DNA of 64,000 nucleotides from positions 372,001 to 436,000 of the forward strand of contig JBLDXI010000060.1 in assembly GCA_047495785.1 (NCBI GenBank), written 5' to 3'. This document shows, piece after piece, positions 28,321 to 50,600 of this stretch; the stretch's first letter is position 1, and each line of letters begins with the position of its first letter. The stretch is from Lepidodermella squamata. Its lineage: Eukaryota > Animalia > Gastrotricha. The notes beneath the pieces were generated by a model. It saw nothing but the letters and a program-made list of their open reading frames with translations, searched no databases and was not told where the DNA came from. A program made the translations under genes and the position numbers.

Positions 28321-29099
28321 GTTTACAATAAATAAGAGCTAAAATTAATTATTTAATTTGCCCTCGTGTCGTTTTGCTCTAATTTCGATCTCTATCGATT
28401 TTTATTCATTTACCCATTCATCAAACTAATCCAAAAAATCAACTAATTTGTTTATTCATTTTAGATTCATTTGCGGAGCTGTCCGTGCGGAGCTGTCGCA
28501 CGAGAGCGGATGGCAACCCGCCGGCACAGGTTAGTCTCTCTTAATTTTCTAACATTTATTTTATATTTCCTCGAATTTTCTAGGTTTTTACCAATGGAAA
28601 CGGCGCGGTTACATTGGCAATTTCAACTATTCGGCAACTAAAGACCTTTATTCGCCAACTGAACGCTGAATAGCAGTGACGTCAACCGGTGTCTTCACCT
28701 ATACTAATATAGCGACTCGCCATCGACCGCCATCCACCATCGACATGACTTTATGTCGCGATAAGTCCCGATTTAAGTGAGTCACCCTGATTTTTTTATT
28801 GATTTTGATTACCCTATCGAAATTAATCAAAATTTAAACTTGACGATTTTTCGTTCTCTCCTACTTATTATTCGCGTAATTGCTGTCGACTTTCTCGTAT
28901 TTCTTCTGGATTTAATGATCAATTAATAAATTTCAACGGAAACGTTTGCCCTCAAATTTTGAGGTACAGCAGCCATTTGAAGCCATTTGAAGTGAAGCGC
29001 GGTCACAAAAATGACCTTTATCGACATTTCAGCTGTATTTTCCGCAAAAAATATTTTACAAAATTTATATTTAAATTTGTTCGTTCTCAAAAATCCGTA

Positions 29100-30760
29100 T
29101 AAGCACAAGAAAATATAATCGAATTATAAGCAGCCCTTTAGGCTTTATGCATAAACTTTTCTCATCAGAGTAAAGAATTTGTATGTTCAGATCGCTCGTT
29201 TTTTTCAACGTTATAACGCCTGGAATTTTGAAAAAATTTCGGTAGATCAGGGTGTTTGAAAGCGAACTCGAAAGGCTTACATTTGTCCCGGTTGCTGTAA
29301 TCACGCTCGATATTGAGGCATCAAAGAAAGCCATCTGAGGCATCGATACATGTTTCAAATGCGATTTAATACGAAAAGCCCAGCCCAGCAAAAATATTCG
29401 CTTCTTTTGCGAACATCGCACAGTCGCTGGTTGAAAAGTGGGTTTTCGTGCCAGAAATTTAGTTCCATGATATTCTTGTGTCTTGTCTTCTATCAAATCA
29501 CTGATCTGATATTGTTCACCGTATGTCGGTATTTTTCTCCGATATGTTAACGTCTGGAATTGGAATTGGTTTGAAAGTGATTTCGACACGCTCACATTCG
29601 TTAGCTCGATATTGAGCAGAAAATCGCCATGATTTAGAGTCATCGATCCATGTTTACCGGGATTTCAGCGAAAAAGCCCATCATGACACAAATATCTGCT
29701 TCTTTAGTTTTGCTTTGTTGAATATTGGGAATATTGACTATTGGGACAAAATCAGCAGGCAGATTTACGCGTACAGCCAGTGACGAAGTTGCAACTTCGA
29801 ATTTTGGCATTTTTCAAGCGACCCTGAGAACCCGAATTGGGACATAACTTCGCGTAGAAACGGACAATTCGGTACCAGGTCCATTTTCAGGAAAATATGA
29901 AAGTGTGATATGGATATAAAAGTGTGATATCTGAAAACGAAACTTTTCAACGCTATCTTTCGCGGTAGTCTTCGCGGTTGTTCAAAAAAAGTCCCAATAT
30001 TTAGTAATTGACTTGAGGATATGTCAGACTTCGGTGCCTGTTTAATAGGTTGAATAAATCAATTCGATCCAAGTTAACAAATTTTGGGCCATTTGGGCCT
30101 TGCTTTGAACGAGTAACCTAGCAATTGAACTATAGGTTGAAGCATTCGTTCAAACTTCATCCTGACTTCTTTAATAACTACGCATAGAAACTGCGTTAAC
30201 GAGGTCCGCCACGGTATAAAAACGACGATTGAGGCAGGTTAGAAAAGTTCCATCATTCTGAGACATCGATCCTTCGTCCAATTGCAATTTGATCTGCAAG
30301 CGCATGGGGAAGTCGAATTCCAGCATCAGACATGATCGACAATCCGTTCCTTCACATTTTCAGCTTGGTCCTCTCTAAGGACTAGCATGTCTAACAGATT
30401 TTCAGATGGCAACTTCAAAGAATTTATCGTCAAAAAATTCGCCTACATTTTCAGAGAGTTATCTCGATATTTGTAGATGCCAACCGTTCCAATTTTGTCC
30501 AGTCCTCGAGACAGCTCATTTCCTGGTTCGATTCCCATCTCCCATCATCCCTGAGATCCTGTTTTTCAAATCGTTCATTGAAGTAGTTGTTGAGATTTGC
30601 TGAGAGTTCCTGCAATTCGGAATGATAGTTAGAATTCCGATGTGAGGTGAAAAGCCCAGCCCAGCACAAACATCGGCTCCTTTAGTTTTGCTATCTTGAT
30701 TATTGGGATTATTGGGAACCTTCCATTTCGAAGCAGTGAGCATTGCTGTTGACACTCCTG
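29100..30760 (-). pseudogene. Degenerate, internally triplicated coding-like sequence
   Basis: AAAAGCCCA(G/T)C..(G)CA(A/C)AAA(T/C)AT..GCT(T/C)CTTT recurs at ~29373, ~29672 and ~30650. Broken minus-strand ORFs with many stops. Confidence 0.35.
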
Positions 30761-31386
30761 CTAACTTTCATGATCAACCAATTCAGTGGTGCGCAAGAGA
30801 GTGCTCCGTCGAGGCATTTGACGGCTGGCCTTTGGCGGTCGGCTGGCCTTTGAGTTTTGCGACTGTTCGACGCTTGTTCCGTTAAAGATTTGATTTTAAA
30901 TAACCTCAATCTGCGATCTCAATTTTATGAAGTAATTTCGGTGATTAAGGTGGTGATTAAGGCGGCCGTTAAGGTACATTTCTGGCCGCCAAATTCACGG
31001 CGACCACGGATTTAAATAGATAAATAGCAATCTGTAAACCATAATTAACTATTCGCTGAAACTAACGCTGAAGTAATTTCCCGTCATTCTCATTTTTAGT
31101 TGCTGCTGTCGATATCGCCAGTAATGCCGACCACGACATATTGTTACCGACATGCTTAGCCATAGCCATTGGTCGACAGAATAGGCCAGATTGAACGGCT
31201 ACAAATCTCATTAACAATCTACAGCGTAAGTGTAAAAAGAGGCGACATTTTTTCTTAAAAATGTCTTCTTTCATGCTCATGCGTCATTTCTCGGTATTTT
31301 CTTCATCAGCGATCTCGATTTTGTTTTGATTTTGATTTTGAATTTTGTTTTGTCTTCACATTTTCCATTGATAACCTGTCTGTTCC

Positions 31387-32732
31387 GCACATTTACGGAT
31401 CCGCGGTGGTTTCCTCCGGCCACTAGAACGATGTGAAAGGCTATTTTTCCATAACAATTATTTGCTTGCACACTATTGGCCGATTCAAAAATTAACGCGG
31501 TAACCGCACTAATGCCACTGTGAGACAAAATAACCGTCGACTTTGCAGATTTGTCACAGATTTGTGGCTAATAGTCAAGACCGACGCAATTATTAAGAAA
31601 CACATTCTCACAAACTGTAAAAAATGACTTTTAGCGAAAATTATCCCACTAAGAAATTTGTAAATTTCGAACGAATTTCTCAAATTTAACAATCAGTTAT
31701 TGGAGAAAATAAACTAAGGCTTCGATTTGCAAGCAATTTGAACTATTTATATTCAAAAAATCACGCCTTGGCATAATTCAAAACTATAAAAAATTACCCA
31801 TTATCAATTTTCTGCTTTTAAATCGATGGTCACAAATTTAGTTATAATTTTCCATTGGATGTTGGAAAGTATGCTATCCTATTTTTTAAAATTTTCAGAG
31901 CTCAATTTTATCGCCCATTTTTGTCGAAAAAACCGTAATGCCCATTCATAATTTAGTGTAGTAGTGACCTAATTAATTATTGTGCGGAGTGTTTGCGTGG
32001 TGCAAAACAAAAAATAGTGAGAGCAAATTTTATTGCTATGTGATATTGCTACTGCAGAAAAAACGAATAAAGCCACGAAAGCAGCGCGAATGAACGTAAA
32101 CTGCAATACTGTAATGACAGTAATGACAACCTTACCCTTGACGAAAAAAATTAATCTCGGTTTTATTAAACATTTTTTTTTTGATATTCCAAGTCCGCCT
32201 GAAAAAACCCGGGTTCAGGATTGTAAATAGTGATAACAAGCAGCCTGTTGATTTCATTATCGAGTGCAGCTGAATTTTGCGTCCAGTTTTCAGCGATCCC
32301 AATTGATAATTATTGTTGAATGTTATGGCGATCGAGTTGGGTGATTTTTTCCAATTTTTTCTAATTTTCAGCAAGGAGTCAAAGGCGTCAATAATGTTGA
32401 AATTCGAAATTAGAGTAAAATTCACAACCTCTGCTCATTTTTCAATTATTGATTTCACTGGATTTGGGAGTTTTTTTAGGAAAAATGTTTCAATCATCCT
32501 AAAAAAATTCACTTTCAACAGCGTCTGAAAATGAGTCTCTTATATTTGCGCCGGTCTGCATTATTAGCCATGAATTAGTCGACGGTTATTTTGTTTCGCA
32601 GCGGCATTAATGCGACTCCCGCGTTTATTTCTGAATCGACCAATAGCGTGCGAGCAAATAATTGTGAGAGAAAACTATCCTTTCACAGTGGTTTAGTGGC
32701 CGGAGGAAACCACCGCGGATCCGTAAATGTGC
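31387..32732. mobile_element. Non-autonomous DNA transposon with ~155-bp TIRs and 9-bp TSD (MULE-like)
   Basis: TIR GCACATTTACGGATCCGCGGTGGTTTCCTCCGGCCACTA; TSD GTCTGTTCC at 31378-31386 and 32733-32741. Confidence 0.88.
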
Positions 32733-32845
32733 GTCTGTTCCATTGATTGTGGCTGTCTCCTTAAATAAACAACTAAATTAATCATCTCTCATTTCATTTT
32801 TTCAGGTTACGAATCGAAACGAACGACCGCTGTTCCATCGTAAAA

Positions 32846-32957
32846 TTGATTATTCATCGCCGATACTTGATACTGATCTGTGATTTTCACTCTTATTTTG
32901 TATTGATTATTCATCGCCGATACTTGATACTGATCTGTGATTTTCACTCTTATTTTG
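32846..32957. repeat. Tandem duplication of a ~57-bp unit
   Basis: TTGATTATTCATCGCCGATACTTGATACTGATCTGTGATTTTCACTCTTATTTTG occurs twice. Confidence 0.9.
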
Positions 32958-33495
32958 TTTCTTGACTATTATTTATATCATGTCGAATGAAGCTTTACGT
33001 TCCAAACTCCATTTTCCGCCGACCCAGGCAGTAATAGGGTAGAGATGCCGCCTCAATGCTCGGCTATGCAGTTAAATAGCCACCGACGTTGGAAAAGTCG
33101 GTATAAACTTCCACCGTCCCGGCTCAGACGGCGAAAAGGACCACGTCTTGGTGAGACGGTAAAAAAAACTCCGACGATGGGAAGGTCGGTAAAAACTTCC
33201 CAAATGAGGGCTGAGCAACCAGGGCCCTCACTGTGAGTTATCACAAGTACCAAGCTGGAAGGGAACCTGTGACGATCTCTTAGGCATCTTGAGGTCAGAG
33301 GTTTTTCGCCCATTTTTCCAATGCTCAAACCGTGCTTGAAATTCCAATAAATTAAAGAATGAATGAATGGTGGATTAATCATGAAAATTAGATAATTGAT
33401 TGGCGAGGCTTGTTTCCCATTTAGAAAGATTTTAACTGGTCAATTTCGACTGATCATTCACTTCTACTACTACTACCTCTACCACTGCTACTAAA

Positions 33496-36066
33496 ATGAC
33501 AAGATCCACTTTCGATAATAGCCAGAAGCCCCCCAAAAGCAAGTCAGCAACGTGTTCAAAATGCGGCAAAAGTGGCTTCAAGATATCTAGTCATTGCTCT
33601 CAATGTAACGATCACCATGCCGCACGACCTTGCCCAGCTGCTGCGACCTCAAATACAGCTGCGCCGTCAGTGGGTTCCGAGGTGCCATCGGTAGTGCCTG
33701 GTTACCAAACGGCGGGATCTCCAGCAGGTATGTAATGGATTTGCATGATAGCACAACTGTTTTTTATATTTTTTTCGCCATAAGCAGGCAGTAAAAGTTC
33801 TATGGGCATTTCAAGTGAATTCTCGGGGCAAACAATTTAGAAATTTACAACGTCAGTATTTCAGAAAATCTCGCGTCATTCTTCTTAGTTGAGGAAAGGG
33901 ATGATGACAACATCAGAAAAGGGGGAATGAGTTAGAATTTTTAATAATTTTTAAATACTTCCGCGTTTAATAATTTTTAATGATTTTTTGAATAATTAAT
34001 TTGAAATTGGTGACATTTTTGATCCAGACATTCAAGGCAATAACGACCGCGTTTCGTCTACTACGCCGCAACAATCGCCGCCACCAATTGGAACGTCAGC
34101 TTCTGAGCCGGAGTCTCAAAATCATCGTCGCTCTTTTGCTGATGTCGTGTCCGGCCGAATCGGCATCGCTGGACCGGATTTGGCCAGGAGATTGGCGGGC
34201 GACGCATTTCCTTACACTGATTCAGCCTACAACAGGGATGATGGTGCTACAAGTGAGTTTTTGTTAGAAGTGATCATTAATGGCCTGAATGTTGCGCGTT
34301 CTGGGACATGACTTGATTTATTTGATTCGAAATTGCTATTTACCGATATTTTTGCTTCATTTTTTTCTTCTCTCCAAAGGTTGAAATGCCACATGTAAAA
34401 ATTTTTCGCGGTCATTAATTTTCCGTTTGATCTCTTCATTCGGTGTTTTTCTGGGAATACTGAAATTTAAATTAAATTAAATTATTAATTCTTTCTTAAA
34501 TTACCATATTAATTTTGTACTCAGCGGGCAACCTAAAACCAAAGTTAAATCCATTGAAATTCAATGTACTGGCCATAATTATCCAAAACCAAAATTTAAT
34601 GACCGCCGTATTAAATTAGTGGATTTTGTACTATACAGGGTGTCTCCTAAGTAACGCAATCAAATAAAATACACGGAAAAAACGATCAAAAACTCTAAAA
34701 TGAGAGACCAAGTCACATCTAATGGCCGGAAAATATTCGAAAAAATTCAAAAATCACCAAAATAGTAATCAAGAATATGGCATGTTGGTGGGATTGGTCA
34801 AACCGGGTAAAATACCGAAAATTACTGAACCATTACCATCGGGATTTTCCGGGTATTCTCGGGTAAATTTAGAATTTATTGGTTAAATCGCGGGTAAAAT
34901 TTGGATTATTCTCTCAGCAGGTTTGATTTGAATATAATTAGTTTAATCTCCTAAAAAAGTTGTTTCATTAAAAAATGATGCGCAACTTTTAGGACACTCT
35001 GTAGTAGTAGTATGAATATCCACTCAATTCACTTTTAGATTCAAATTCATTTTAGATTTTCCATCGATTTCAGTGAATTAGAAAATAAATTCCGGGACAT
35101 TTTTTAAATTTGGAATATTCAGATGTAGCAACTGTCGGAACATAGCTAGTATTAGTTTTGTGGAGCGTTATATTGTGATCGAAACGAACACAAATTTAAC
35201 CTCGCTGAAATTCCACGCTTTATTTCAAGTTATTGCTCAATTAACTTGGCGAAAGTTTCTCAATTAGGGAACTTTTGCTCGAAAATAGGTGACCGAGAGA
35301 AGCAAACACGCTGCAAATTATGGTATTCTGCTAAATTACTGCTGATATTAGCGGGATTATTCAGTAAATCCTTGACCAAAGCAGCCGAATAATGCCCTAT
35401 TTTATAGATTGCTTGGCAGTTTCACCTGACATCGCCTTGATGATTCCAGCTGCATTGCCACCCCTTCCCGATGGCGAATGGTTGAAGGAAGCAGCTCGAA
35501 TCAATAGGCTGGAAATTGTCGACAACCCTGCTCGAGGCGACTGCCAATTTTACGCAGTTTCCGACGCGGCCAGGCGTGTCGGAATTGTGTATGATTTCAT
35601 GCAGCTGCGGAGGTTAGCCCAAAGTCGCCTTTCTACCGGCTCCTATGACCACCTGTGGGCCTACGACCCTTTGGCGATGCAGGATGCGAGGAATTGCGGC
35701 CAGCCATTGCCTAGTACGAGTATGGCCGAGTTGACACGGCGTATCGGCATGCCTGCGAGACATGGCGGGGACTGGGGCGATAACATTTCCTTGTTATCGG
35801 TCGCAGATGGGCTTGGGGTTACCGTCAAGTTGTTCGATGCTAGAAGCCGAAACATTTTTTCCTACGGAAATGGCTCGGCTGTTATTCACATTGCGTACGA
35901 CGGCAGTGGGCACTATGTTGCTCTGTTACCAGTGTTACGTTCTGAACCTGAAAGACCAGATCAATGCTCAATTAGCAGCCCGATGGAAATTCCGGCTCCA
36001 AGATCCGCGGCCGGTGTCCATTCAGTGGAACCAAATTGCGGAGCCAAATTTCATTTCGGGAATTAA
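33496..36066 (+). CDS. Zn-finger + OTU cysteine protease protein (exons 33496-33727, 34028-34252, 35409-~36013/36066); N-terminal part of a Helitron-like polyprotein
   Basis: CSKC...HCSQCNDHH...C; phase-1 introns with GTATG and GTGAG donors join in frame. OTU catalytic motifs NPARGDCQFYAVS, WGDNISL, HIAYDGSGHY. Further upstream exons (~33.0-33.2 kb) are possible. Confidence 0.8.
34636..35001. mobile_element. Tc1/mariner-type MITE in intron 2 of the OTU gene
   Basis: TA|CAGGGTGTC...GACACTCTG|TA: TA TSD with imperfect TIRs. Confidence 0.75.
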
Positions 36067-36908
36067 TTGGCTAAAAATTCGTTCTCCAAATTTGCTCTTA
36101 TTTCACGATTAATTTGAAAAAATTGTAAGTTATGATATTATCTGTGATTTTTACTACGTATAAGGCAGGTAAAATAATAAAAATAAAAATAATTCAAAAC
36201 AAATTTATAGTATCAACTAGGCTTCCTTGATGATTTCTCGTATTTTTACCTTTCATGATTCGACGTTGGTTATTATTTCTTGATGCGCAAAGAGAATGGG
36301 CGATTTTTTAGCTATCAATTAATAATTATACTGCAATTTGTGTGGGGAAATTTGTCAAGTAATACCTTGAAAAATAATAATAAAAACACCAAAAATGGCG
36401 TCTCGACAAATTTCCAACGCGGAGAAGCCTTGAGTTCAAAGTCGTTAGCAGCCAGGAAAGCACAAAAATTCGGTCGGAAACAATTACGAAAACTCTTCGC
36501 GAAAAATTTGCACATTTGTTTCAATCGCGATTAAATTCGCCCAGGCACTGAATAAAGGCTAGGCATCCTATCCGGTAAGACAGAAAATTGATCACGTTGG
36601 GAATGAGTCGCAAATTACCCACGTTAACAGGATTTAATTGTTTTAGTTCTCTCAAAATCACGATAAACTGTTAAAATAAGTAAAAACAAGCTAATCACTG
36701 TTATTTAACAATGGAGTAATTACCATCATTTACCATTCGATGAAAACTTTCTTCACTTATCGAAACGTAACAGATTAGTTTATTTGAACTCCATGGCTTG
36801 GTCCAGCGTTTAAAATGTTTCACGCCATTTATTCCAAAACATTTTCAACTCCTTTTTAGCTACAATTATGAAACAATTATTAATGGATTTTTCGCCATTT
36901 TTCAACAG

Positions 36909-39900
36909 GTGTCGTCGGAGCTGTATTCGATCCTAATAGGACACGATACCAGTTTGCTCAAGCATGGCGGTTATTCACGCCCGAACAGTGTCAGCTGGCT
37001 CGCGAGTACAGAGAATCCAACCTTGTACCGGGTGCAACAGAAAGATTCAACATCAGACCTGCGGAATTGCTGATTTTCTACAACGTCGACATCTTTCATC
37101 GCGTTTTTGTTTTCGTCCCAGCAGACAAGAAAGCTGAGCTGTTGGAAGACCCAACCAAATCTCCATTTATAGACGCACTCGGTCGGCACTATAAAGTTCG
37201 CAAATGCAGCATCAAACTCGGCTTGGAGTTTCTGCTAAAACAGGATCAAGATCACCCAGCAGTTGCACCGCTGCTTGCCATCTTCATGGCGTTAGCTCAA
37301 GGTGATGTTGAAATGACGACTCGCTACGTAAAACCGACTAATTCTGTCGCCGCCGTCACCGTTCCGTCAAACGTCACACCGAACAATCGCTTCAAGTTTC
37401 TTTACCATTGTATTATGACGCTTGGCTCGATGGAGAATGAACTGCAGGCGATCGCCTTTCGCGACATGCGGCGAAATTTTGCGAACGTCGGCCTTGTTAC
37501 CTATGACGAAGCGAACGATACGTTTCCCAACCTGGAGGCTGAAGTGAAAAACATTTTTCGCCGGCTTATCCTTGAACAGCTGGCCTGGATGCCTGTGTCG
37601 GCGAAAAAGCTGGGAATGTACATCGAGAAAATTCGTGCGATATTGCATGATTTCTTTTTCGTTTCCGGAAGCCTGGATTCCGATTATCCCTCCATTTCTT
37701 CGGTGATTTTGAAGGCCAGAGCATCTCAACAGATCGAAAGTGCTGAGAGGCTCTACCGCGAAGTCCTGGCCGAGGTGACACACGGACAGCTTACTGGTAA
37801 ACTGGATCTCCCTCCGCTGGCTGATATCGTCGAAGCCAGTGTCGCTAATCCTGTTCAATGGCAACCGGTTCTTCAGCGATCGCCAGGTTCTATATTTAAA
37901 ACATTCTATGTTGCATTGTTAATAAATTCTCTTTTTCCAGGTCAAACTGATGCCTCGCTGGACCAACAACGTGAAGCTTTGTCTCACGCTCTACGCAAAA
38001 TCGATTTTTTGCAACAACACCGAGCAAAGTTTAATCATTCCGTTTTCGTCGGTCCTCCGGGTGCTGGAAAAACCTATCTCCTTCAAACAGTTGTTCTCTA
38101 TGCAATGGCTAGAGGTCACAACGTTTGTCTCACGGCGCTGACTTCGGAGCGAGCGCGTTCACTGGGCGGACGTCACCTGCACCTGGTGTTCCCAATGCGA
38201 GTCAACACATCAACTTACTCGCACGCTATTCTCGAGTCTCAGGACTGCATTATGGCGCTCGGCAGGGACCCGGTCAAAGCCCAGCTCATCTACCGGACAG
38301 ACGTCTTCTTCATTGAAGAAATCGGTTTGGTATCAGCGGAGATGTTTGCCCTTCTCGACGCTGTACTTCGATATACAATGGGAAATGACCTCAAATTCGG
38401 CGGCAAGCTTGTCATTGCAACAGGTTCATTTCGGCTATTTTTTTAATTTCTCTGACACTTGTTTTCTATTCTAACTGTTTAGGTGACTTTGCGCAACTGC
38501 AGCCAATCAAAGTATGCTTATTTTTTCAACTTGTGATGTTTTTTACTCTATTTTTCTCAGGGTCGGCCGTTTTGGGTATCCAGCAGCCTGATGTTTTCGT
38601 TCGACGTTGTGATGCTATCACACTATGTGAGAGCCGCGCAGGATCCTCAACTTCAAGGCATCCTCGACCTTTTACGCCAGCCCAGTCTAAATGACATCCA
38701 GCGTAACGAGGTGTCCCAAACGATCTTGGCAAGAGCTCGCTTTTACAACAGCTGGGACGAAGCGCCTGACAATTTGATTCGGATAGTGACCACGCGGGCG
38801 GCTGAAAAAGAAGTTATCGAAGAGTTCATTGCGAGAAAACGCCGGCAGGTTGCTGTTGTTGACTGTGAGTCGATAGACGAGTTCCAATCGGGTTCACAGC
38901 CTTTCATGGCTACGACGAATCAGAATTTCATTAGGAAGCTCGATAAGATTTGTCTTGAACCTCGAAAGCTGTCGTTGTTTGTTGGCGAGCTGCTCTGCAT
39001 GACCTACAACAACATATCAAACGAACCCATGCAGACGTTCTCGCAAGGTCAGCTTGCCATTGTCGTCGCTATCCCGGACAACATCAAGGATAGGCAGGCT
39101 CGTGTCACTGTTCGGCTTGTTCCGCCGGGCCAGCGAGCAGCGGCTGTTGTGGATCCTACTTGGCCTCTCATACAAGTCCCGCGACATGCTGGGATGCCAA
39201 TCATCGTTGGCCTTGATGCTAAACGCGCCCGCCGAGTTCAGTTTCCCTTCCGCTACTACGTACATTTTTCACGCCTCTTCATGTACATGTTCAAAATCAC
39301 ATTCTTTTTCAGCTTTGCACGACGGTCCACCGAATTATGGGCACTACTGTCGAAGAGGGCGTAGTTATCCAGGTGTCCGATGTCGTCAGGTCACAGCGCA
39401 TGTGGGAAAAGGCGCAACTGCTGGTGATGGTGTCTCGGTGTCGTAATTTGGACCGTGTCGGTTTTGTCACATCGAGCCAACAAGCTACGGCTAATGCGAT
39501 CGATTCGATATTGACAAAAGACAACCCCTACGATGGCGCCATCATGTCTCGATTGGCTCAACTCGACATCCTCACCGTCCGGCAGCCTGTGGTTAGCATC
39601 ACCGACCCGGTCTTCTACGTCACAAATTCGGTCGTGCCAATCGTTGACTGGGGCGTCGTTTACCACCTGATTTCGGAAACGCGCCCGTATGTTTCCTATA
39701 TTGGGCAAACTGAACGTTCGGCCGAGGAGCGCCTCAGGGAGCACAATAATGGTAACGGCGCCAACTTCACCCGAGGTGACAAGTGGCTATTGCTTGGCAT
39801 AGTCTATGGCTTTACCTCGGATGAGGCTCGCATGCGACTTGAGCGGGACATCCACCGTGCTCTGAGACCTGATCTTCTGCCATGGCAAGTTCGTGCAGTT

Positions 39901-40118
39901 GTCATCGATCAGGTGGACGAGACAAGCGCGAGACAAGCTTTCCTTCGGAGATTGGCCATTGTCACCTTTGGACGGCTGAACGAAGCGAAAGTAACGCAGC
40001 TGGCGAACGGGCGTGGCAACGAAACACCACTGGCTCATGTCCGAGATGTATGTTTTTTGTTCGTCATCTTGTGATCTTCATGTTCTTAATTGCTATAATA
40101 TAGGTGCGATTCGAATAA
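36909..40118 (+). CDS. PIF1/SF1B helicase fused to C-terminal GIY-YIG nuclease (exons 36909-37886, 37941-38423, 38483-38511, 38561-39259, 39313-40047, possibly 40104-40118)
   Basis: GPPGAGKT, FFIEEIG, FGGKLVIATGDFAQLQPI, VRAAQD...ILDLLR, RVQFPFRYYLCTTVHRIMG, QLLVMVSR; then VVYHLIS...SYIGQT...RLREHNNGNGANFTR...W..GIVYGF. All introns are 49-59 nt, GT-AG and in frame. Confidence 0.88.
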
Positions 40119-41816
40119 CAAGTCTCGCCGATTTCGGGTTTTTCGATCATGGTTCAAATGACATTTTAAGCCTGTCTCACCGTTTTCAGCTTTTTTCGAT
40201 ATAATAAAATGCAAATCACTGTTTTTGCCCAATGACATTATATTGAGGGTAATCAAGGTGAGGGCAGGTGCATGTGCAAAGATTCACCAATACATCGATT
40301 CCGGTTGCTGTCATTGTAGAGAATATAATATCATTGGGGAGGGGCGAAAAACGTTCCCCTCCAAGATGGCTAGGAGGGGAGTTCCAAGGGGTAGTTGAGT
40401 GGAACCTTTGTGAAACCTTATATGCTCAGCGCAAAGCTGCCAAAATGAACCACATTCATGTCCTAGCATGGTTTTTTTACTGGATTTGCAGTGTCAAAGA
40501 ACAACTATTTTTTCAAGGTCTGGTCGCGGTTGGTCGGAACGGTCGTGCTGGTGGTTGACAAAAAAGGGGGCTTATATAGCTATAAGCACCCATCCAACTG
40601 GCGAATTCGGCTGAAGAGACTGATAATGCCTTGGAGTACGGTGGTTTCTTCCATCTGAATTTGTCATATTTTGTTGGTGAACTAGTTCTGGTGGCTATTT
40701 ATTTACTCAGCCTCTTTTTATTTGTTCCGAATTCATCTAACACAAAACACAACTAAACTGGCTAGATTTCGCTTACTCGGCATATTCTTCTTTTCCCAGA
40801 TCGCTAAAAGACCCGCCTTTTATTGATTTGGGCCTGAAGTCTCCAGGGTTGTCAATGTAAAAACCTTGATGTAAAAACACCGTGTATAAACACAGTGTAA
40901 AAACTGTATTTATCGAGCGGGTTTTTCCACGTGTAGAAACCCCTAGTTAAGAAAATTCGTAAACTTGTGCTTTGAAGAAGCGAAAACAGCTTGATAATGT
41001 ACATAACAGCTTGATTTTCATTTAGTCATGCCATTATAGCTCGTTTTACAGGGGCATGTCACTGTCCCCTGTTTATGGTGACATGCCAGATAAAATTGTA
41101 ATGCTAAGCATTAAGTGTCACTATGATCGAGGTTTTCGAAAATGGGTAAAAAACAGTGCTTCACTTTATCGTGGCATGACACTCAAAGCTCGGTAATACG
41201 GTATCAATTTCCCGAAGACCTATAAGCGGCCATGCCGAAATAGACCTGATTTCGGCAGGTTATGGCAGGCTATGGCAGGCGATGACAGGCAGCTACAGGC
41301 GAAGGCAAGCGGTAGGAATAGTCAGCGGTAGAAGGCAAGTCACGTCGGGTAAGGTACGCGTCACATTTTCCGTGGATCTCGCCCAGCATCGGAAATTCGC
41401 TTTCGATATTTAGCTCTCCTTTCTTTCAGACGCAATCTCTGGCGTTGACGTCGAGAAAGATTCGGATTCATCAATGTTCGACGTTTGCTTCTTACGTTCG
41501 GCTTCTTGACGATTAATGGCGCAACTTAGCTCAAGACTTCTAGTGGGCAACTTTTCAGCTTTTGCCGTAGGCTCTCACAGCCAAGTTCGTTGCAATCTAA
41601 CGTGTCAAGTTTTTCCTTCAAACGGCCATTCATCTTTTCCGAGTCGACACCACGAAAACCAAACTCACCGAAAACTTCTTTCAAGCCATCAGAAACGTCG
41701 ACATTTTAACCGGTACGGTGGCTACTAAGGACAAAGGTGATTACAAAGGTGCCTACACGAAATAACCTAAGGTGAAGGGTGAATTCACGTAGAAGAGTGA
41801 AGTTGTTATAGCACGT

Positions 41817-42491: not shown

Positions 42492-42573
42492 TGTAAAGTT
42501 GAGAACAAGTCAGAGATAATTTCAACCCAAAAAACGAGAGCGTTTATTAAATATCATTTCCATCTTTAACAGG
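42492..42573 (-). repeat. Truncated LTR end matching the Gypsy LTR at 53294-53371
   Basis: TGTAAAGTTG..AAGTCAG.GATAATTTCAACCCAAAAAACGAGAGCGTTTATTAAATATCATTTCCATCTTT is shared; differs by a 5-bp indel and a few other changes. Confidence 0.85.
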
Positions 42574-42868
42574 TTTTAGAGCGGTTTTTAGTGAAAAATC
42601 TTCACTATTTCCTCGCTTCGCTCGTTTTTTGGTTGAAATCAGGGCGTGGTCAGGGTGGGGGGTTGGGGTATAAAACACCCCCCAACAAATTCCTGAAAGT
42701 GGTCTCCAACTACAATTTTCCTTTAAATCCTCCATATTTTACTGCATTTTAAGCCCATTTTCGGGTTGAAAATACCCGAAAAAAGCGTCAGCTAAAGCTC
42801 GCTTCGCTCGCAAATAGACTTGAATAGGTTTTAGGCCGCAAATTTTTCGAGCCCGAGGGTGGTAACTC

Positions 42869-42970
42869 ACTCGACACCCATTCGACACCCACTCGACACC
42901 ATTCGACACCACTCGACACCATTCGACACCACTCGACACCATTCGACACCACTCGACACCACTCGACACA
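42869..42970. repeat. Tandem array of 10 x A(C/T)TCGACAC(C)
   Basis: Directly visible 10-11 bp units upstream of the YR cassette genes. Confidence 0.95.
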
Positions 42971-43256
42971 TTCGCCTGCGGCGGCCATATTATTTTACAT
43001 TAATTGTTAAAATAAAATAATATAAATAAATTTATCTCACTATTTTTTATATTAATTTTTGATATTGTTCAAGAATAAAATTTAAAATGAGTCGTTAGCA
43101 ACATTAAAAACTCATTAGCAGACAAAAGACAATAAAGACAATGCGGCACCGTTGCGGAACCGTTGGCTCCCGTTTCATTTGAATTTAAACCTGGTTTAGC
43201 TCTGCACTACTGTATTTTACACTGTTCTTTCAGTTTACAGTTTTCAGTCCTTCATT

Positions 43257-43598
43257 ATGGGCCGCAAGTTTAACCCTTTCGATCCATTTAGCTGGGTTAA
43301 CAGTGACTCAGTAGATACCATTGATTCGGAATCAGTTACTCAATCAACAGCTCAGACCACTGACTCCGAGTCTTTTTTTCAAAACACCACGACGTCAGTT
43401 TTCAGCCTTCAAAACAACTCTACTGCACCATGCCCAGTGGAGGCATATGAGATAGTCATATTTTGTCTATCCTTGTTCTTGCTCGTGGCTGTTGTCACCT
43501 CAATTGTTTTCGCCTCTCGTCGCTTCCGGTGCAAATCTAAGAAGCGGTCTAACGATGCCGAGCAACTGCACTACAATCGCCTTGACTCTCAAGTTTAA
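43257..43598 (+). CDS. Small single-pass membrane protein (113 aa)
   Basis: S/T/D-rich N-terminus, TM IVIFCLSLFLLVAVVTSIVFA, basic juxtamembrane SRRFRCKSKKR, C-terminal YNRL (YxxL). Confidence 0.65.
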   Translation: MGRKFNPFDPFSWVNSDSVDTIDSESVTQSTAQTTDSESFFQNTTTSVFSLQNNSTAPCPVEAYEIVIFCLSLFLLVAVVTSIVFASRRFRCKSKKRSNDAEQLHYNRLDSQV

Positions 43599-43795
43599 TG
43601 TTTGTTTTTTTATATTTAGCTGTTACGATGAACAAGCACGAAATTCTTGCATACTCTAACAAAGATCAATCCATCTTTAGATCGACAGAGCTGAGCCGAT
43701 CCGAACTCGAACTGACTATCTTGCAATACGCCCTTTCGCTAATCATGGCAGTGCTGGTCGGATTCGTAATTGCCCGTGCTCTCAATATGGACTGA
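43598..43795 (+). CDS. Very small C-terminally anchored membrane protein (65 aa, or 55 aa from Met 43628)
   Basis: TM ILQYALSLIMAVLVGFVIA; overlaps the upstream stop as TAATG; AATAAA at ~43970. Confidence 0.45.
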   Translation: MFVFLYLAVTMNKHEILAYSNKDQSIFRSTELSRSELELTILQYALSLIMAVLVGFVIARALNMD

Positions 43796-44021
43796 CATTG
43801 TTTCCAATTGAATAATATTATCCTTGGATCGTTTATATCAAATTAACATTTGAAATGCCTGTATCAAATTACTTATCATCATCCTACGACGGTGAATCGC
43901 TAATCTTGTCGTTGTGAATCAAGAGTTAACAGATATTTAATATTTAATATGCTCAATATTCTTGAACTCAATAAACGTTTCTTACAATTTCATTGTGTTT
44001 TAGGTTTATTCTTATTACTTT

Positions 44022-44901
44022 ATGTTTTCACTTCCGAAGGCTTTTCAGCTTTGCGTCTACTTGATGCTCCTTACGGATTCGATGGGCTATCCTGCCAGCG
44101 GAGAGTTTCTGCTTGACATTTTCAAGCTCAATAGAGACGACCAAGGTCATATCGTGCGGAAGCGTGATACCACGATTGCGAGAAAGCCGGAGATATTGGA
44201 AGTTGCTAGCGGTCTTCAATACTACCGTGCGTATCAAACCGGGTCTAACAAGTGTTTGGCAAATTTCACAAAAATTGGTATGGCTCTATTGTTATCACTT
44301 GCTTGTTTTTATAAGATTGGTCTTTCAGCGGAGAAGATGTGCGAGTGGCCGCTTCCTACTGAAAAATGGGATGAGTTGACGATGAAGCTCATGTCTTGTT
44401 TCGTGAGACATTCCTGTAGCACTATATCTTGTGTGATGACTCTACCCGAAGAAGATATTCGAACGTGGGCAACTTCTTTCAGTTTGGTCAGCCCTTTGTG
44501 CGCTTACCTCGCTACTAACGGTACACATCTTTCATTGGCCGATTCGCTTTTTGATTTGGAAGCCTACAAAAGTTTTGGCATGAAAGCTGCTGAACTTGCT
44601 TCTACTGTATTTAACGTCGCGAGCAAATCTATTCATTTCTTTCGGCGTGAGATCGTTTATATTTTTCTACTATTTGGCGCGAATTGCATGGACTTTGTCG
44701 TCTTCTCTTTTCAATCATATACATAACATCTTCAAAAAAAACAAAAAAGTCCAATTCACCCCAACCAATCAGCCTCCTCAAGAGACTGTGCCTCTCATGG
44801 AGTCTAGCAATGAAATAATGAAGCAAGGCATTTTGAAGGCGAGTAATTGTTCAGGTTGCTCAAATTGTGGACGACGAATTTCAACCAGGAAACGGAATTG
44901 A
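44022..44901 (+). CDS. Signal-peptide + Gex1/Kar5/Brambleberry-like cysteine-rich domain + TM protein (probable intron 44278-44328; frameshift near 44680)
   Basis: Spliced sequence SNKCLANFTKIAEKMC...ELTMKLMSCFVRHSCSTISCVMTL...WATSFSLVSPLCAYL has the six-Cys spacing of the Gex1/Kar5 domain. Hydrophobic N-terminus; the TM near 44650-44710 continues in the adjacent frame into a basic tail. Confidence 0.55.
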
Positions 44902-45105
44902 TTGTAAATTGATGCATTGTGACTCTGCGTGTTTTGACATTCGATTCGCTTTTGTGTCGCGGCTTTTTATACCCATTTTATACTATGTTATACTCAATGC
45001 TCTTTTCTCTTTTTTCATGCTCTGACATGTAAGCTCATTAAATTTCCTCAATTTAATCAAAATGATTCATGTGGTCTGATTTTTTTTGTCGATTTTAGAG
45101 AATTA

Positions 45106-47283
45106 ATGTCCCAGTTTGTTTTCGGAGACTTGCCTTTTCCGCTATTCTTGATGGATCCCGAAGATCGATTTGAAGAAAGCAGCGATAATTTCTCAACGAT
45201 GCAGGCAACTACGAGCGAAACGACTCGATATCACGATGCCCTTGCTGACCGAACGAATACTTGCTCGGGAAATATTTCAAGTCACTTCGCTAAAAAGAAG
45301 TGCCGACCCCGCGCTGGTAACGGAAAATTTGCTCCATATTTGCCTTTCAATGAGCGGAACCGCAAGGATCGTCATCTGCAACGCTACTGCGTTTTTTGCG
45401 GAAGCCCGAAGAGCACGAAATTCCTCAAACAGCATATCTTGCGCTACTGCCCGGAGACTGCCGGTCGTCGATCGTCCGATGAAGTCATCAAAGCTGCAAA
45501 CTATGTGCGCAAGGCTGCTATCTTTCAAGGATCCAAACATGGACTAGCCCATCGTAAAACACCATCTGCCCGAGGTGTGAAAAGGGTGAATTTTTCAACT
45601 AATTCCGAATCATGTCATCGTTCGGCGCAAATGGATTCGACAGAGATTTCACAAGGATCTTGCGTTTGCTCAAGAATCAGTACGCCGAAAAATGCCCATT
45701 CTCAAGGATTCAGCGATAATGGAACTTCGAATTCCATCTGTACTTGTTCGGAAAGCCAACGCCGTGCTCCAGTTGCGTGCTCTACACCTGCTCTTCAGAA
45801 TATGGATGCTGATGTCTCTCATCCAGTCGATTTCACATTCAACAGCTCATTTGATCAGTCCAATTGTTCGGGTGAGAACGAGTATTTCGGTGACGATGGC
45901 GCTGTCTCCTCTCGGCAGCAGAGCGAATCTAATATTTCACATGTTCAGACTTCGAATGAAGGCGTCGTATTGGACGACACTTATTTCGATGAATCGTCTG
46001 ACGAAGAGACATCAGGCGAGGCGACGTTGTCAAAGAAATTAACCCGTATCGCGCTGTCTCCAAGCCCAATTAAGAAGACGAGAAAATTGAGTAAAAAATA
46101 TGTCACCAATGATCCTCGCTTGAAGCCGGCCCTCGAGCATTATAAAGATCCAGATTTTAAAATGGAAGCAACGCAAGATGATCGCAATGCTAAAACTGTT
46201 CGATCGCGTTATTCCGGACTAACCGGCATCCTCAATTTGGCAGGCATATTCACTGTTGAGGATATGCTCAATGTTGACAAATGGTTCGATTTCGCGGCTC
46301 GTGAGGATCGATTGATTACGACAAATTTACGCGGTGGGGAAGAGCCAGTCTCGTGCCACAGTCTCTACATGAGATTCATGGCTTTAAAAGACTTCTTGCA
46401 AATGTTTCGAGACAACTTCCTTTTACCGAGACGTCTTGTTAGCGAATCGGAGCGTGAAAAAATCGATTTCATCATTACCAGATTCCTTGACCCGAGGATC
46501 AAGCAGTGCAATGCTAAACGTGGCAAGGCACAGGCTGCGCTGAAACACGAAAGAATTGATGAAAAGGTCACTATTCATCTAGCGCCACAATACGCTGAAT
46601 TCATTTCGCAGACGATCGCCGAGATGGAGAAAGCAGGCCAAATTGTGCCGTATGCCTTTCGAATTGCGAGAATTGTTGTTAAAATGAACGCCTTCAATGG
46701 CTGCCGCCCTTCGAGTCTCGCAGGCATGAAGGAGGCTGAATTCGATAAGCGATTTTCCGAGATCCCGGGCACTTGGACAGTTCATGTCCTGGAGACGAAG
46801 AACGGTAAGCGGTGCTTCCCCTACGTTACGATGGACCAGGAACTTGTGGAACTCTACGACGAATACCGCCGCAAGTTCCGGCCGAAGCCGGCTGACCCTA
46901 AAAGCGCCAAGTATTTACTGCTACGAAGTGATGGCAAGAGGTTTGATTGCTTGTCCTACTACGCAAGTATTTTGTGGGACAAATTCGTCCTAACTCTTCC
47001 ATCTACTGCCCGACCGAGTCTCGCATCATATCACTTTTCAATGCAAAGGCGCATGATGCAGACAAGTTCTCGCCACAATCAAATTCCTGGCTTGACTCCC
47101 GCCCAACAGAAACAGGTCAACCGCTACCTCCACCACACCGATGGCGTTGCCGAGCAAATCTACGAGCAATTTATTTCACCTCAGGAACATGCTGAAATTT
47201 TCTTGAAATTTAAGGAATTTCTCAGTTCTCAGAAAAAACCCAAACAATCGCCAAGAAAAATGCCTAGATCAAAGAAACCTTGA
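45106..47283 (+). CDS. Tyrosine recombinase (phage-integrase fold) with N-terminal C2HC Zn finger, 725 aa, intact
   Basis: CVFC-x12-H-x4-C; catalytic set NGCRPSSL (R), VLETKNG (K), SMQRR (R), YLHHTDGVAEQIYEQ (H...Y); AATAAA at 47511. Confidence 0.88.
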   Translation: MSQFVFGDLPFPLFLMDPEDRFEESSDNFSTMQATTSETTRYHDALADRTNTCSGNISSHFAKKKCRPRAGNGKFAPYLPFNERNRKDRHLQRYCVFCGSPKSTKFLKQHILRYCPETAGRRSSDEVIKAANYVRKAAIFQGSKHGLAHRKTPSARGVKRVNFSTNSESCHRSAQMDSTEISQGSCVCSRISTPKNAHSQGFSDNGTSNSICTCSESQRRAPVACSTPALQNMDADVSHPVDFTFNSSFDQSNCSGENEYFGDDGAVSSRQQSESNISHVQTSNEGVVLDDTYFDESSDEETSGEATLSKKLTRIALSPSPIKKTRKLSKKYVTNDPRLKPALEHYKDPDFKMEATQDDRNAKTVRSRYSGLTGILNLAGIFTVEDMLNVDKWFDFAAREDRLITTNLRGGEEPVSCHSLYMRFMALKDFLQMFRDNFLLPRRLVSESEREKIDFIITRFLDPRIKQCNAKRGKAQAALKHERIDEKVTIHLAPQYAEFISQTIAEMEKAGQIVPYAFRIARIVVKMNAFNGCRPSSLAGMKEAEFDKRFSEIPGTWTVHVLETKNGKRCFPYVTMDQELVELYDEYRRKFRPKPADPKSAKYLLLRSDGKRFDCLSYYASILWDKFVLTLPSTARPSLASYHFSMQRRMMQTSSRHNQIPGLTPAQQKQVNRYLHHTDGVAEQIYEQFISPQEHAEIFLKFKEFLSSQKKPKQSPRKMPRSKKP

Positions 47284-47618
47284 ATTAGCTTCGTTAATAT
47301 TTTCGAATTCCTCGTGAAAGCTCTTATTCAATGCTTTTTGCATGTAAATGATTGCCTATTGCCAGTTCTTGTAAATTGTTTGTAAATTTCTATTACTCAT
47401 TCGAACTTATTGTTGACGTCATGGAAACATCCGCACGGATCCGCAATATTTATTACTTAATTCATTTTTTTTTATAATTTATTGGTTCTTAATCATTCGT
47501 GCAATATCAGAATAAAGACGACGTGGTTTTAAATAAGTCTTTTTCATGTATCCGGTGATTTTGTCGGGGAGAAATGTTCCGGCTGTAACAAAGACAGCGT
47601 CACCTAGCTGACGGAATT

Positions 47619-50600
47619 TCACGAATATTGTGCTAAGCTAGAGCCTCGGATAGAATAATCAGAATGCCTTGCAAATTTCGCTGAGTTCGCTGAGTTATCA
47701 AAACCTTGCCGATTTATCAAAATGGTGTCGAGTGAGTTATATATTGATAACTTATCCAGAGGAACCAAGGTTTTGCCTGGTTTAAGTTTGATCATGGCGC
47801 ATTTGAGGCAAGAAGTGCACCAACTCATGATGTCTACTCCCATGCCTGGCCAGAAGAATTTTGCTTGGATACTAGCGAGGGTTTTACCTGCTCCTAGATG
47901 TCCAGCTGCTGGGATCGAGTGGAATAGGTGGAAAATTTCCCCTCTTCGCTTTCTCGGTAATACGATCAAATCTGTATCGTTTTTCATATCGCGGAGAACA
48001 CAAACACCAAAGTGAGAGGAACTTGTTGATTCTGGGGCTCTTCCACTTCGTGAGTGGTTTGCCGGAGCGATTTATTACTGCTTCGCAAATTTTTCCGATT
48101 TCGGGATCGTCGAGCTGCTCTTTGGCAAGCGCGTCCATTTCCCAAGCTAAGGCATCAGTGAATTTGATCGCGTTGATCAGTTCTTGTTCTGGACTAATTC
48201 TGGAAAGTGCATCGGCGATCACTTGGGTTTCGCCCGGCGCATACTCGATATCGAAATCAAACTCATTAAGCCAAAGTATCCATCTGTGGACTTTCGGAGA
48301 AGGCTTTTTGCAAGTTTTTAACCAAGTTATTGGCTTATGATCTGTGATCATGGTGAATTTTACACCTTTTAAGTAATCGCTGAATGTCTGGGTTGCCCAG
48401 TATAGGGCGTATGCTTCGCGTTCTGTTGTGATCCATTTCTGCTCAGCTTTTGTGAGGGGCTTACTAGCATAGGCCACTGGCCTTTCGCCTTCGCCTGAGT
48501 CTTGCATCAGGGTGGCGCCCACACTAAAACTAGAGGCATCGGCGTAAACACGGAATGGCAGTTCATAATTTGGAAGTGCTAGTACAGGTGCTTCTTTCAA
48601 AGCTGCCTTGAGCTTCCAGAACGCGGTTTGACATTTCGAATCCCACATGAAGGGAACGAGATCGCTCGTCATTTCTGACAATGGCTTAGCAATTTCTGCA
48701 TAATGTTGTATGAATTTACGGAGATGACCTGTCATTCCGAGGAATCTGCGTAACTCTTTTCGAGTCTTTGGCGCTGGGTAATCATCGATTCCTTGTGTCC
48801 GCTTGGGATTTATTTCAACTCCCCACCGGTGAATTATCTGACCGAGAAAAGGGATGGAAGTTTCAGCGATGATGAGTTTTTCCTCCTTCATTGTTAAGCC
48901 AGTTTTGGCGAGTTTTGACATGACGGTGTCGACGATGTCGAGATGTTCATCAACGGATCCTTTGTTATGCACAATAATATCGTCAACGAAAACTGTACAT
49001 TTCTCATCCGCAATTTCCTCACGCAAAATTTGGTCCATGACACTTTGAAAAATTTCGCTTGAGTTATTCATGCCAAATGGCAAAGCACATAGCTGATATT
49101 TCCCCCACGGTGTCTCAAACGCAAGTATGCCACGTGAGTCCGGGTGAATGGGAATTTGGAGAAATGCATCTTTCAGATCGATTTTTGTGAAATATGTACA
49201 CTGACCCAAACGTTCGAAATAGTCAGCTGCCGTTGGCAAGGGATACCTGAATCTTTTGATATTCTTGTTTTGCCGTTTGAGGTCGAGGCATACTCGAGTT
49301 GTGCCGTCCTCATTCATGACGAAATGAGGTGGCGAGTTGTGTCTGCTCAGACCTGGTTCAGGCTCGGCTTTGCCGTTATCAATCCACCGGTCAAGGGTCT
49401 CTTTGAGAATACGCTTCTGCTGAGGATTCATTTTTCTGGGAGGCTCAAAGCTTATGAGTTTCGGATCGATTAATTCAATTCTGTATCCGAATTTTTCCGC
49501 CATACCAATCCTGTCATTCTTGCCAGAGACATAATTTTGGTATTTTTCTTTCAGGGCAAGGATCCTTGGATCATCCCGTGCGATGGCTGGAAATTTTTCG
49601 AGACTGGCCTTCAGTTGGGCTTGAAATTCTTCAGGCGCCAACGTTTTGGCGGAAAAGGGCTTTTCAAGCGCAGTGAGCTCATCTCTGTCCTCGTTTTCTG
49701 AGGATGATTCAGAGATTTTACGCTCTTTAGGCTTCCGGGTTCGTTTCTGCTTCGGCTGATGATCGTCCGCACTAGTAAAAATAAGTTATTAGCTAGCAGG
49801 GCTAGCTAGTCGCTAGCTAGCTCACTGTTTCAGCACTATGTATAAGGTGGGATATCTAGCGCGCAATGAAAAGTTGCTAGCTAACGGATCAAGTTGCTAA
49901 ATAGCGCAACGCTTAGACGCGAATATTGACAAGCTGCTATAGAGAGCTACCTAGCAGGTTATTTCGTAATCTAGCTGCTAGCTAGCATATGATCGTGCCT
50001 CGATGCGCTATCTAGCAGGACCTGAAATTCAAATACTTCCCGCCAACCGCCATTTTGGATTTTCACCTGCTAGCTAGCCCAAAAATTCAAATTTTTAAGC
50101 TAGCTAGCCCAAATATTTGAATTTTCAAGCTAGCTAGCGCACATCTCTCGCACAACAGAACTTGAATGCCTTGACATTGTTACATTTTCTCATTTCAAGT
50201 CAACTTAAACTTAGAGCATCAGAACTCCGGCTAGGTATTGCGGTTACTTTCTCTGTTTTCCCGCCCGTTTTCATACGAAGTAATGTATCGATATTTGTAT
50301 TTTTTAGATCATAGCTACGATAAAAGTTTACCATCAAACGCGACGCGGCCAGCAGCCAAGGATCGCTCTATGAACTGGTTTTTACATCGCTTTTATCTTT
50401 TATTTCAGTAACAAAGTAAGTAACAGTTATTTGATAATTGCTGAAATCTAATTTTCTTGCCTGTTTTTAGTTCTTGCAACAAGCTGTTTGATCCTATGCA
50501 ATATCAATAGATGCGCTGTACTAGCCGCGGTGGCTGTTCAAATTCTAATACTGCTGCCTAACTGCTCTCGTCGACTATCGTTATCTTCGGCCATTTAGTA

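Follow-up and report, generated by a model that had tools for sequence, protein, structure and literature searches.

A PIF1-like helicase joined to an SLX1-like GIY-YIG nuclease in a family of Helitron-like elements from the gastrotrich Lepidodermella squamata

In this study, we analysed a 64,000-nucleotide stretch of the genome of the gastrotrich Lepidodermella squamata (the window, in which position 1 is the first letter), where three long open frames lie on the forward strand between positions 36909 and 40074. Read together, these frames encode, in order, a conserved domain that is here called 'mid', a PIF1-like helicase and a C-terminal GIY-YIG nuclease domain. Pfam recognises the helicase as PF05970 (E 5e-12, window:37067-38446) and the nuclease as PF01541 (E 2e-9, window:39337-40074). 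The locus resolves into five exons and four introns, the latter at 37887-37940, 38424-38482, 38512-38560 and 39260-39312; all four have GT..AG borders, which were refined by hand from the sequence and read against a paralogue on contig C29 of the same genome (L029:4969-6933). An AG acceptor immediately precedes position 36909 and the stop codon finishes at 40074. The exons are the following.

36909-37886, forward strand: exon a, the 'mid' domain, which in full-length relatives sits between the Rep domain and the helicase; 52% identity to the L029 mid domain (tblastn).
37941-38423, forward strand: exon b, helicase domain 1A, with the Walker A motif GPPGAGKT at 38051-38074; Pfam PIF1, E 5e-12.
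38483-38511, forward strand: exon c, a 29-nt micro-exon with the helicase motif GD-x-AQLQPI, collinear with the intron-free L029 open reading frame (ORF).
38561-39259, forward strand: exon d, the central part and the 2B part of the helicase; 58% identity to the L029 ORF (tblastn).
39313-40074, forward strand: exon e, with the final motifs of the helicase and a linker, then the GIY-YIG domain (approximately 39655-39870) and the stop codon; Pfam GIY-YIG, E 2e-9.

A first-pass annotation, made from the letters of the window, had proposed that four introns of about 50 nt are spliced out so that the helicase reads in frame into the GIY-YIG domain, and that the Y..YIG..R..HN...E residues of the nuclease are intact. 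Both proposals are borne out. The introns measure 54, 59, 49 and 53 nt, and their removal restores the helicase motifs and preserves the frame into the nuclease, in which Y109, Y121-I-G123, R132, H136-N137 and E169 are all present (numbering of the translation of window:39337-40074). The C29 paralogue, which is approximately 55% identical, is one uninterrupted ORF of 654 amino acids (aa) that takes in the helicase from its Walker A motif onwards as well as the GIY-YIG domain, and in which Pfam finds both PIF1 and GIY-YIG. Introns 2-4 of the window are precisely missing from this paralogue, and the window exons abut in its coordinates (tblastn). Furthermore, helicase and GIY-YIG occur together at about 20 loci of the L. 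squamata genome, and because of this co-occurrence a chance juxtaposition of the two can be excluded. Other copies, namely these about 20 loci and the intron-free C29 ORF, uphold the fusion. A comparison with a sister copy on contig C64 points in the same direction: divergence between the two copies is 0.58% in the exons, 2.3% in the introns, 1.9% in the 3' untranslated region (UTR) and 6.2% in the 5' non-coding DNA, all 25 of the 25 indel columns fall outside the exons, and the codon changes comprise 11 synonymous and five non-synonymous ones. This is the pattern that would be expected of real exons under purifying selection.

The gene lies within window 15453-40485, which we read, on structural grounds and with high confidence, as one copy, approximately 25 kb long, of a Helitron-like rolling-circle transposon. 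Its two ends are defined by the following sequences.

15453-15800, forward strand: left terminal sequence (LTS), which opens with the hexamer CTNGAT, variable among copies and CTCGAT in this one, and continues with GATTGCGCGAACC.
40075-40485, forward strand: 3' UTR and right terminal sequence (RTS), which closes with a T-run and then a nearly invariant ACTGGAT.

More than 20 genomic copies start matching at exactly position 15453, with 85-98% identity, and the alignment of the LTS junctions contains seven unrelated 5' flanks, with CTCGAT, CTGGAT, CTTGAT, CTAGAT or TTCAAT as the hexamer in front of GATTGCGCGAACC. At the other end, more than 25 genomic copies cease matching at exactly 40485-40487, and ten independent 3' junctions end with CTGGAT and have unrelated flanks beyond it. 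The element thus begins with (CTNGAT)GATTGCG and closes with CTGGAT. A CTRR-like tetranucleotide, CTGG or CTAG, is found two bases inside the 3' terminus, and the bases that flank the insertions are variable and not A/T specific. The C64 sister copy, which is 96-99% identical, is collinear with window 15452-40485. At one head-to-tail junction a single CTGGATG is common to both units. The hexamers were also considered as a target-site duplication (TSD), which was rejected, as the 5' hexamer varies and the 3' hexamer is constant. No terminal inverted repeats (TIRs) were found, the longest inverted match between the first and the last 300 nt being 9 nt long and internal; in the ends examined, which are those of the window's subfamily, the 40 nt at one terminus do not form an inverted copy of those at the other. 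A short hairpin near the 3' end of the window copy is not kept in other copies. Many LTS-RTS pairs are found 3-8 kb apart in the genome, and these mark abundant non-autonomous derivatives that are internally deleted. On contigs C42 and C20, more distant members of the family form arrays that repeat about every 15 kb.

The 5' flank of other copies is recurrently a tandem repeat of approximately 659 bp that ends with a T-run and CTAGAT and directly abuts the LTS at at least ten loci. It is seen at C4:634398-636475, at C64:374394-377259, 424146-425560 and 430403-433745 and at other sites, and it is likewise found after the autonomous copies on C4 and at C64:414-424k. Tandem amplification of the 3' end of a sister subfamily probably gave rise to this repeat, which would thus be another form of head-to-tail junction.

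In full-length copies the order is an OTU ORF, a 400-aa N-terminal ORF, a Rep region of about 900 aa, mid, helicase and GIY-YIG. This order is present on C29, C7 and C33, at two C64 loci and in the C42 arrays, and the gene order is repeated at at least eight loci of the genome; the OTU ORF lies upstream of Rep at five loci, including C29, C7 and the two C64 loci. The corresponding features of the window copy are these.

35392-36066, forward strand: OTU-like cysteine protease ORF of 224 aa, with the catalytic Cys in a GDC motif and a His motif, GHY, in the C-terminal part.
36020-36021, no strand: internal deletion junction, at which approximately 10.4 kb with the N-terminal ORF and the HUH Rep are missing relative to the C64 sister copy.
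18408-18878, forward strand: isolated N-terminal fragment of Rep that ends at Rep motif 1, within approximately 16970-20730, which is missing from the sister copy.

The OTU ORF of the window has no direct Pfam match, and we accept it as OTU because of a transitive match through P0022, a full-length relative described below: BLASTP aligns the ORF with the Pfam-OTU region of P0022 (E 1e-10), and the motifs of the catalytic Cys and His are in register. At the deletion junction, window 35219-36020 corresponds to L044:2888-2086 and 36021-37618 to L031:1603-1. The two flanking points are 10,482 bp apart in C64, and the interval between them holds the N-terminal ORF (ORF1) and Rep. Since this deletion removed the N-terminal region and Rep, the window copy is, judged from its sequence, an internally deleted and non-autonomous derivative, which for its mobilisation would have to depend in trans on full-length relatives, such as the C64 element with its 96-99% identity. 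The only Rep similarity within the window is a fragment of 95 residues at 18591-18875, with 59% identity to residues 378-471 of the L029 Rep (tblastn); the DNA of this region is 92% identical to L030:3309-4126, and the fragment probably derives from a related element, by nesting or duplication. Window 16970-20730 and 26270-33410, both within the element, are missing from the C64 sister copy. The first of these holds sequence, the stray Rep fragment included, with 88-92% identity to DNA that lies downstream of the C29 copy (L030), and both are probably nested insertions or rearrangements.

The helicase had been assigned in the first-pass annotation to the type found in the RepHel proteins of Helitrons, and the paralogues agree with this, as they carry an HUH/two-Tyr Rep for which Helraiser is the sole match in the PDB. 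An alignment of the Rep core of 30 family members (A2) contains motif I (T-x-F-x-T-x-T-C-N-Q), the HUH motif (G-N-L-P-H-x-H) and the tyrosine motif (R-Y-L-x-K-Y), with H141, H143, Y326, K329 and Y330 invariant. A profile built for Rep has exactly one PDB match, the Helraiser transposase 7lcc (E 3.5e-4, 23 bits), and its three motifs are collinear with motif I, the HUH motif and the stretch KYLFKY of Helraiser. The helicase of the C29 paralogue likewise has Helraiser 7lcc as its best PDB match, followed by Pif1 helicases. Single Rep ORFs give weaker signals: L029:1268-4030 has no Pfam match at E<=0.01, the C64 Rep ORF reaches only 14.8 bits, and for such single ORFs nothing was found in NCBIfam, or in the PDB by phmmer. 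Two metagenomic members of the family, P0006 and P0022, exceed the Pfam cut-off for Helitron_like_N. On the Helentron-type protein P0168, which carries an Exo_endo_phos domain, the Rep profile scores 29 bits, compared with 23 bits on Helraiser. If anything, these scores would lean slightly towards HLE2, the group of Helitron-like elements (HLEs) that comprises the Helentrons; both are remote and the placement rests on these two values. The earlier proposal that the gene belongs to a Helitron-like element therefore stands for the family, from which full-length paralogues with HUH and two-Tyr motifs were recovered, whereas the window copy itself is Rep-less.

Between the HUH and the Tyr motifs of A2 a cluster of His and Cys residues is conserved (H205, C207, C214 and C226; H-x-C ... 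R-C ... C-R-V-P). The spacing suggests a zinc-binding insertion, and the cluster partly aligns with His and Cys residues of P0168.

The family extends well beyond the gastrotrich. An exhaustive HMMER search with the 654-aa C29 ORF against 1.84 billion representatives gave 3284 matches at E<=0.001 and 240 clusters at E<=1e-30; the architecture counts that follow refer to the best 150 of these matches. Rep, mid and helicase are in identical order in 55 of the 55 proteins of at least 1800 aa, the mid domain is present in 100 of the 150 representatives, and, with a GIY-YIG profile made for the family, the nuclease was detected in 116 of the 118 matches that extend at least 110 aa beyond the helicase. 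The catalytic positions of the nuclease are 73-93% conserved among 123 relatives; in a cleaner alignment of 57 sequences (A1), Y18 and H45 are invariant and the other catalytic positions are conserved to at least 90%. Named members come from the tunicate Styela clava (2532 aa, annotated as 'uncharacterized protein') and the ostracod Cyprideis torosa (1667 aa). The remainder are mostly metagenomic, with the JGI label 'predicted GIY-YIG superfamily endonuclease', and many family proteins have a length of 2200-2900 aa. In P0022, a single ORF of 2814 aa, Pfam finds OTU, Helitron_like_N, PIF1 and GIY-YIG together. The nearest cluster in the ESM Atlas consists mostly of GIY-YIG plus PIF1 proteins, which are mostly eukaryotic, with diatoms as the commonest recorded taxon. 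A word-indexed protein search with the helicase region of P0022 returned only 13 proteins, one of which is the Helentron-type P0168. Since GIY-YIG is still present beside helicases that are only 24-37% identical to that of P0022, the nuclease is an old and integral part of this clade and not a local capture. The first-pass annotation had seen here a nuclease capture that defines a distinct rolling-circle lineage; a coherent and widespread clade, with GIY-YIG in 116 of 118 members, fits the idea of a lineage, which may be distinct from Helentron/HLE2.

Another member, P0042, belongs to an array on a 723-kb ENA contig of another organism (L071), where the units repeat about every 21 kb. On this contig RepHel-GIY-YIG ORFs of 2811 and 2820 aa are found about 21 kb apart, with identical small ORFs repeated between them, in a head-to-tail array.

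The label 'SLX1-like', which the first-pass annotation had given to the nuclease, is appropriate for the nuclease domain. By sequence, the best relatives of solved structure are the UPF0213 protein BH0048 (E 0.004) and then Slx1. An AlphaFold2 model of the domain on the family alignment has a mean pLDDT of 86.9, and when this model was searched against the PDB with Foldseek, ranks 1-11 were taken by ten Slx1 chains and At-HIGLE (E 8e-5 to 1e-3, probability 1.0), while UvrC first appeared at rank 25 (E 1.2). The modelled fold thus supports an SLX1-like domain that is closer to Slx1 than to the GIY-YIG domains of UvrC or of homing endonucleases. In agreement with this, the signature of Y, Y-I-G, R, H-N, P-W, G-F and E is common to the family domain and to SLX1 and the UPF0213/YhbQ group. 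There are also differences from SLX1, as the transposon domain is without the cysteine-rich RING/PHD finger, is fused to a helicase inside a transposase and has no known SLX4 partner. In place of the finger, a tail of 70 residues without any Cys/His cluster follows the nuclease, and in the model this tail forms only one helix and a short hairpin.

How might such a protein work? In the Helraiser model, a two-Tyr Rep cuts single-stranded DNA (ssDNA), the helicase moves 5' to 3' and the element is copied out by a rolling circle. Current models for Helitrons are based on Helraiser and have the ssDNA-specific HUH domain alone make the donor and target cuts. Helentrons have an additional apurinic/apyrimidinic (AP) endonuclease, and we know of no explanation for why it is there. 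Slx1 cleaves 5' flaps, forks and junctions. For the family described here, we propose that Rep would cut ssDNA at or beside the hexamer CT(A/G)GAT, which is found at both borders, and that the helicase would then peel the strand off in the 5' to 3' direction. The GIY-YIG domain would take over the role of the Helentron AP endonuclease and cut duplex or branched DNA that is beyond the reach of the ssDNA-specific HUH domain, either by nicking the target or second strand or by trimming the flap or junction left by strand transfer. The 5' hexamer is variable and the 3' hexamer invariant, which suggests that insertion may take place beside a target similar to CTNGAT, one that looks like the 3' end of the element itself. 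If the ends of the elements themselves were preferred targets, tandem head-to-tail arrays would result. A comparable logic applies to the tetranucleotide target of IS91 (PMC10288648).

Taken as a whole, we suggest, as a tentative proposal to which we give somewhat less than an even chance, that these elements form a third deep and widespread branch parallel to HLE1, the group of Helraiser, and HLE2. It would be characterised by an obligatory C-terminal SLX1-like GIY-YIG nuclease that is required for transposition through the cutting of duplex or branched DNA, by an OTU-Rep-helicase protein of 2200-2900 aa, by elements of 15-25 kb and by a CT[A/G]GAT nick and target site that drives the formation of head-to-tail arrays. 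A second, unrelated nuclease fold, fixed throughout a large clade at this very C-terminal position, argues that an accessory cut specific for duplex DNA or for a particular structure is a real and recurrent need; the GIY-YIG domain is small and near to the well-studied Slx1, and it is therefore a tractable object with which to test this idea. Public databases list the giant ORFs of the family under the names 'uncharacterized protein' or 'predicted GIY-YIG superfamily endonuclease', and, because the copies in this genome are below the Pfam threshold for Helitron_like_N, tools that rely on this domain are likely to miss them, which would have consequences for the annotation of repeats, both in the genomes of animals and in metagenomes of eukaryotes.

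Several points weigh against the main reading, that of a Helitron-like rolling-circle transposon with an SLX1-like nuclease. The Rep domain is missing from the window copy and the Rep ORFs elsewhere in the genome are below the Helitron_like_N threshold, so that the proposed Rep homology draws on the motifs, the Helraiser profile match at E 3.5e-4 and the two metagenomic members. Support for the four introns comes from the comparison of copies; no RNA run was found for this stretch, and the sole sequencing run that was found is of DNA, with contigs that retain the introns and show no joints. The termini fit neither a canonical Helitron, with its 5'-TC and A/T insertion site, nor HLE2, with short TIRs and T/T insertion. 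No empty site was found in the assembly, in which the 5' flank of the window copy is unique. The exact position of the nick and the preference for a CTNGAT target are points that we infer, and the biochemical role of the GIY-YIG domain is a plausible suggestion and not an established function.

Could the gene have left the element and become part of the host's own repertoire? The window copy has lost its Rep domain but has an intact frame and regular introns, and its exons are far better conserved than introns and flanks, with 11 synonymous and five non-synonymous changes relative to C64. All of this could be expected if the Rep-less OTU/mid/helicase/GIY-YIG gene were a domesticated host gene, for example a helicase-nuclease for repair or genome defence. 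However, the gene is still found between the LTS and RTS of the family, its sole close relative belongs to a full-length Rep-bearing element and no orthologous single-copy host gene was identified. In addition, an excess of synonymous changes is also expected from selection on active master copies before or around the time of duplication. We therefore consider domestication improbable.

Even less probability is assigned to two other explanations. It might be argued that the element is an integrated virus-like replicon, that is a large Rep-encoding episome whose helicase and nuclease serve viral replication or homing, given that PIF1-like helicases of Nucleocytoviricota follow the GIY-YIG/PIF1 cluster among the helicase neighbours in the ESM Atlas and that the elements, at 15-25 kb, are of considerable size and contain additional ORFs. 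However, no capsid or packaging gene was recognised in them, Rep and helicase are fused as in Helitrons, and sharp repeated termini, short deleted derivatives and head-to-tail arrays at many sites are typical of a rolling-circle transposon, which makes a viral origin very improbable. It could also be imagined that the GIY-YIG domain has no role in the element and represents a recent, lineage-specific capture or an artefact of joining neighbouring genes. Helitron-like elements are known to capture fragments of host genes, and the single published case of such a nuclease, in HelenSM92, is described as a capture (PMC11417382). This explanation is difficult to reconcile with a GIY-YIG domain whose catalytic residues are conserved, which is found at the C-terminal position in 116 of 118 relatives, down to approximately 24-30% helicase identity and in a tunicate, an ostracod and metagenomes, and which shares one uninterrupted ORF with the helicase in several organisms. 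It is already largely refuted, and is the least credible of the three alternatives. Of all these possibilities, a rolling-circle transposon that carries GIY-YIG as one of its own domains is thus the one that we favour.

Besides the genes discussed so far, the element carries a further ORF that is shared with the C64 sister element.

23655-24731, forward strand: ORF of 358 aa with a C-x3-C-x8-C-x-C stretch, 83% conserved with the C64 sister element.

This ORF has no Pfam or NCBIfam match. Its feature neighbours in the Atlas are all OB-fold proteins (CTC1, POT1, MEIOB/REPA_OB and Ssb-like), with a recognition score that is below threshold, and it may, as a weak suggestion, encode an OB-fold ssDNA-binding (RPA/SSB-like) accessory protein as in other Helitron-like elements. 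A 79-aa ORF at window 33496-33735 (forward strand) with a C-x2-C ... H-C-x2-C spacing is located upstream of the OTU ORF, in a region whose sequence is also conserved in the C64 element. Shortly after the end of the element, within window 42566-47754, an ORF of 725 aa (45106-47283, forward strand) has no Pfam match at E<=1. On the reverse strand, window 47884-52478 holds ORFs that, as read from their translations only, resemble a long terminal repeat (LTR) retrotransposon: a 585-aa ORF with the reverse-transcriptase motif F-V-D-D and an adjacent fragment like an integrase zinc finger, a 197-aa ORF with the protease motif D-T-G-A and a gag-like ORF with a CCHC knuckle.

The genome of L. squamata also contains canonical Helitrons, which score 180-211 bits on Helitron_like_N. 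None of them coincides with the GIY-YIG loci, and their helicases match the helicase of the GIY-YIG family weakly. Their Rep domains are found at C35:58086-58622, C15:2399564-2400121, C9:1112086-1112781 and approximately 35 further loci, and one of them lies in an open frame of 2403 aa that could be a Helentron-type element. Replitrons were considered as possible relatives and were rejected, as their Rep has a single Tyr and they lack both a helicase and GIY-YIG (PMC10288648).

The first-pass annotation knew of no described group with GIY-YIG at this position, a statement that is true only in part. The HLE2 family HelenSM92 of the moss Sphagnum magellanicum has been reported to have 'captured' a GIY-YIG domain, in one sentence of the HELIANO study (PMC11417382). 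This sentence is the sole mention that was found in the full-text papers searched for Helitrons or Helentrons with GIY-YIG or SLX1. In the 404 genomes of that study, 20 domains were found to be a stable part of HLEs; its text names about 18 of these, and GIY-YIG is absent from the names given (PMC11417382). The architecture is therefore not wholly undescribed, but it is barely described in the searchable literature. According to its published description, on which the comparison is based, HelenSM92 resembles the present family in having GIY-YIG beside RepHel. A precedent for a eukaryotic mobile element with a C-terminal GIY-YIG domain is provided by the Penelope-like retroelements, in which a reverse transcriptase is followed by a GIY-YIG endonuclease that is used for integration (PMC6431247); these are, however, retroelements with an unrelated enzymatic core.

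Among rolling-circle transposons, Helraiser and HLE1 share with the family the collinear Rep motifs I, HUH and Y-x2-K-Y and an SF1B helicase, the absence of a TSD and a CTRR-like 3' tetranucleotide. The family differs from HLE1 in that it is without the 5'-TC start and the A/T insertion site and carries OTU and GIY-YIG. With Helentron/HLE2 it has in common a two-Tyr HUH Rep with a PIF1-like helicase, an upstream OTU, an extra C-terminal nuclease, head-to-tail arrays and the lack of a TSD. It differs in that the family proteins are larger (2200-2900 aa), with remote similarity to the single Helentron reference that was compared (P0168), and that there are no TIRs and no T/T insertion signature. 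Above all, the extra nuclease is an SLX1-like GIY-YIG domain and not an Exo_endo_phos AP endonuclease; neither the window nor the paralogues have a match to Exo_endo_phos, nor do four giant relatives, and GIY-YIG occupies the position where it would be found. The layout of the family thus parallels that of the Helentrons, with GIY-YIG in place of the AP endonuclease.

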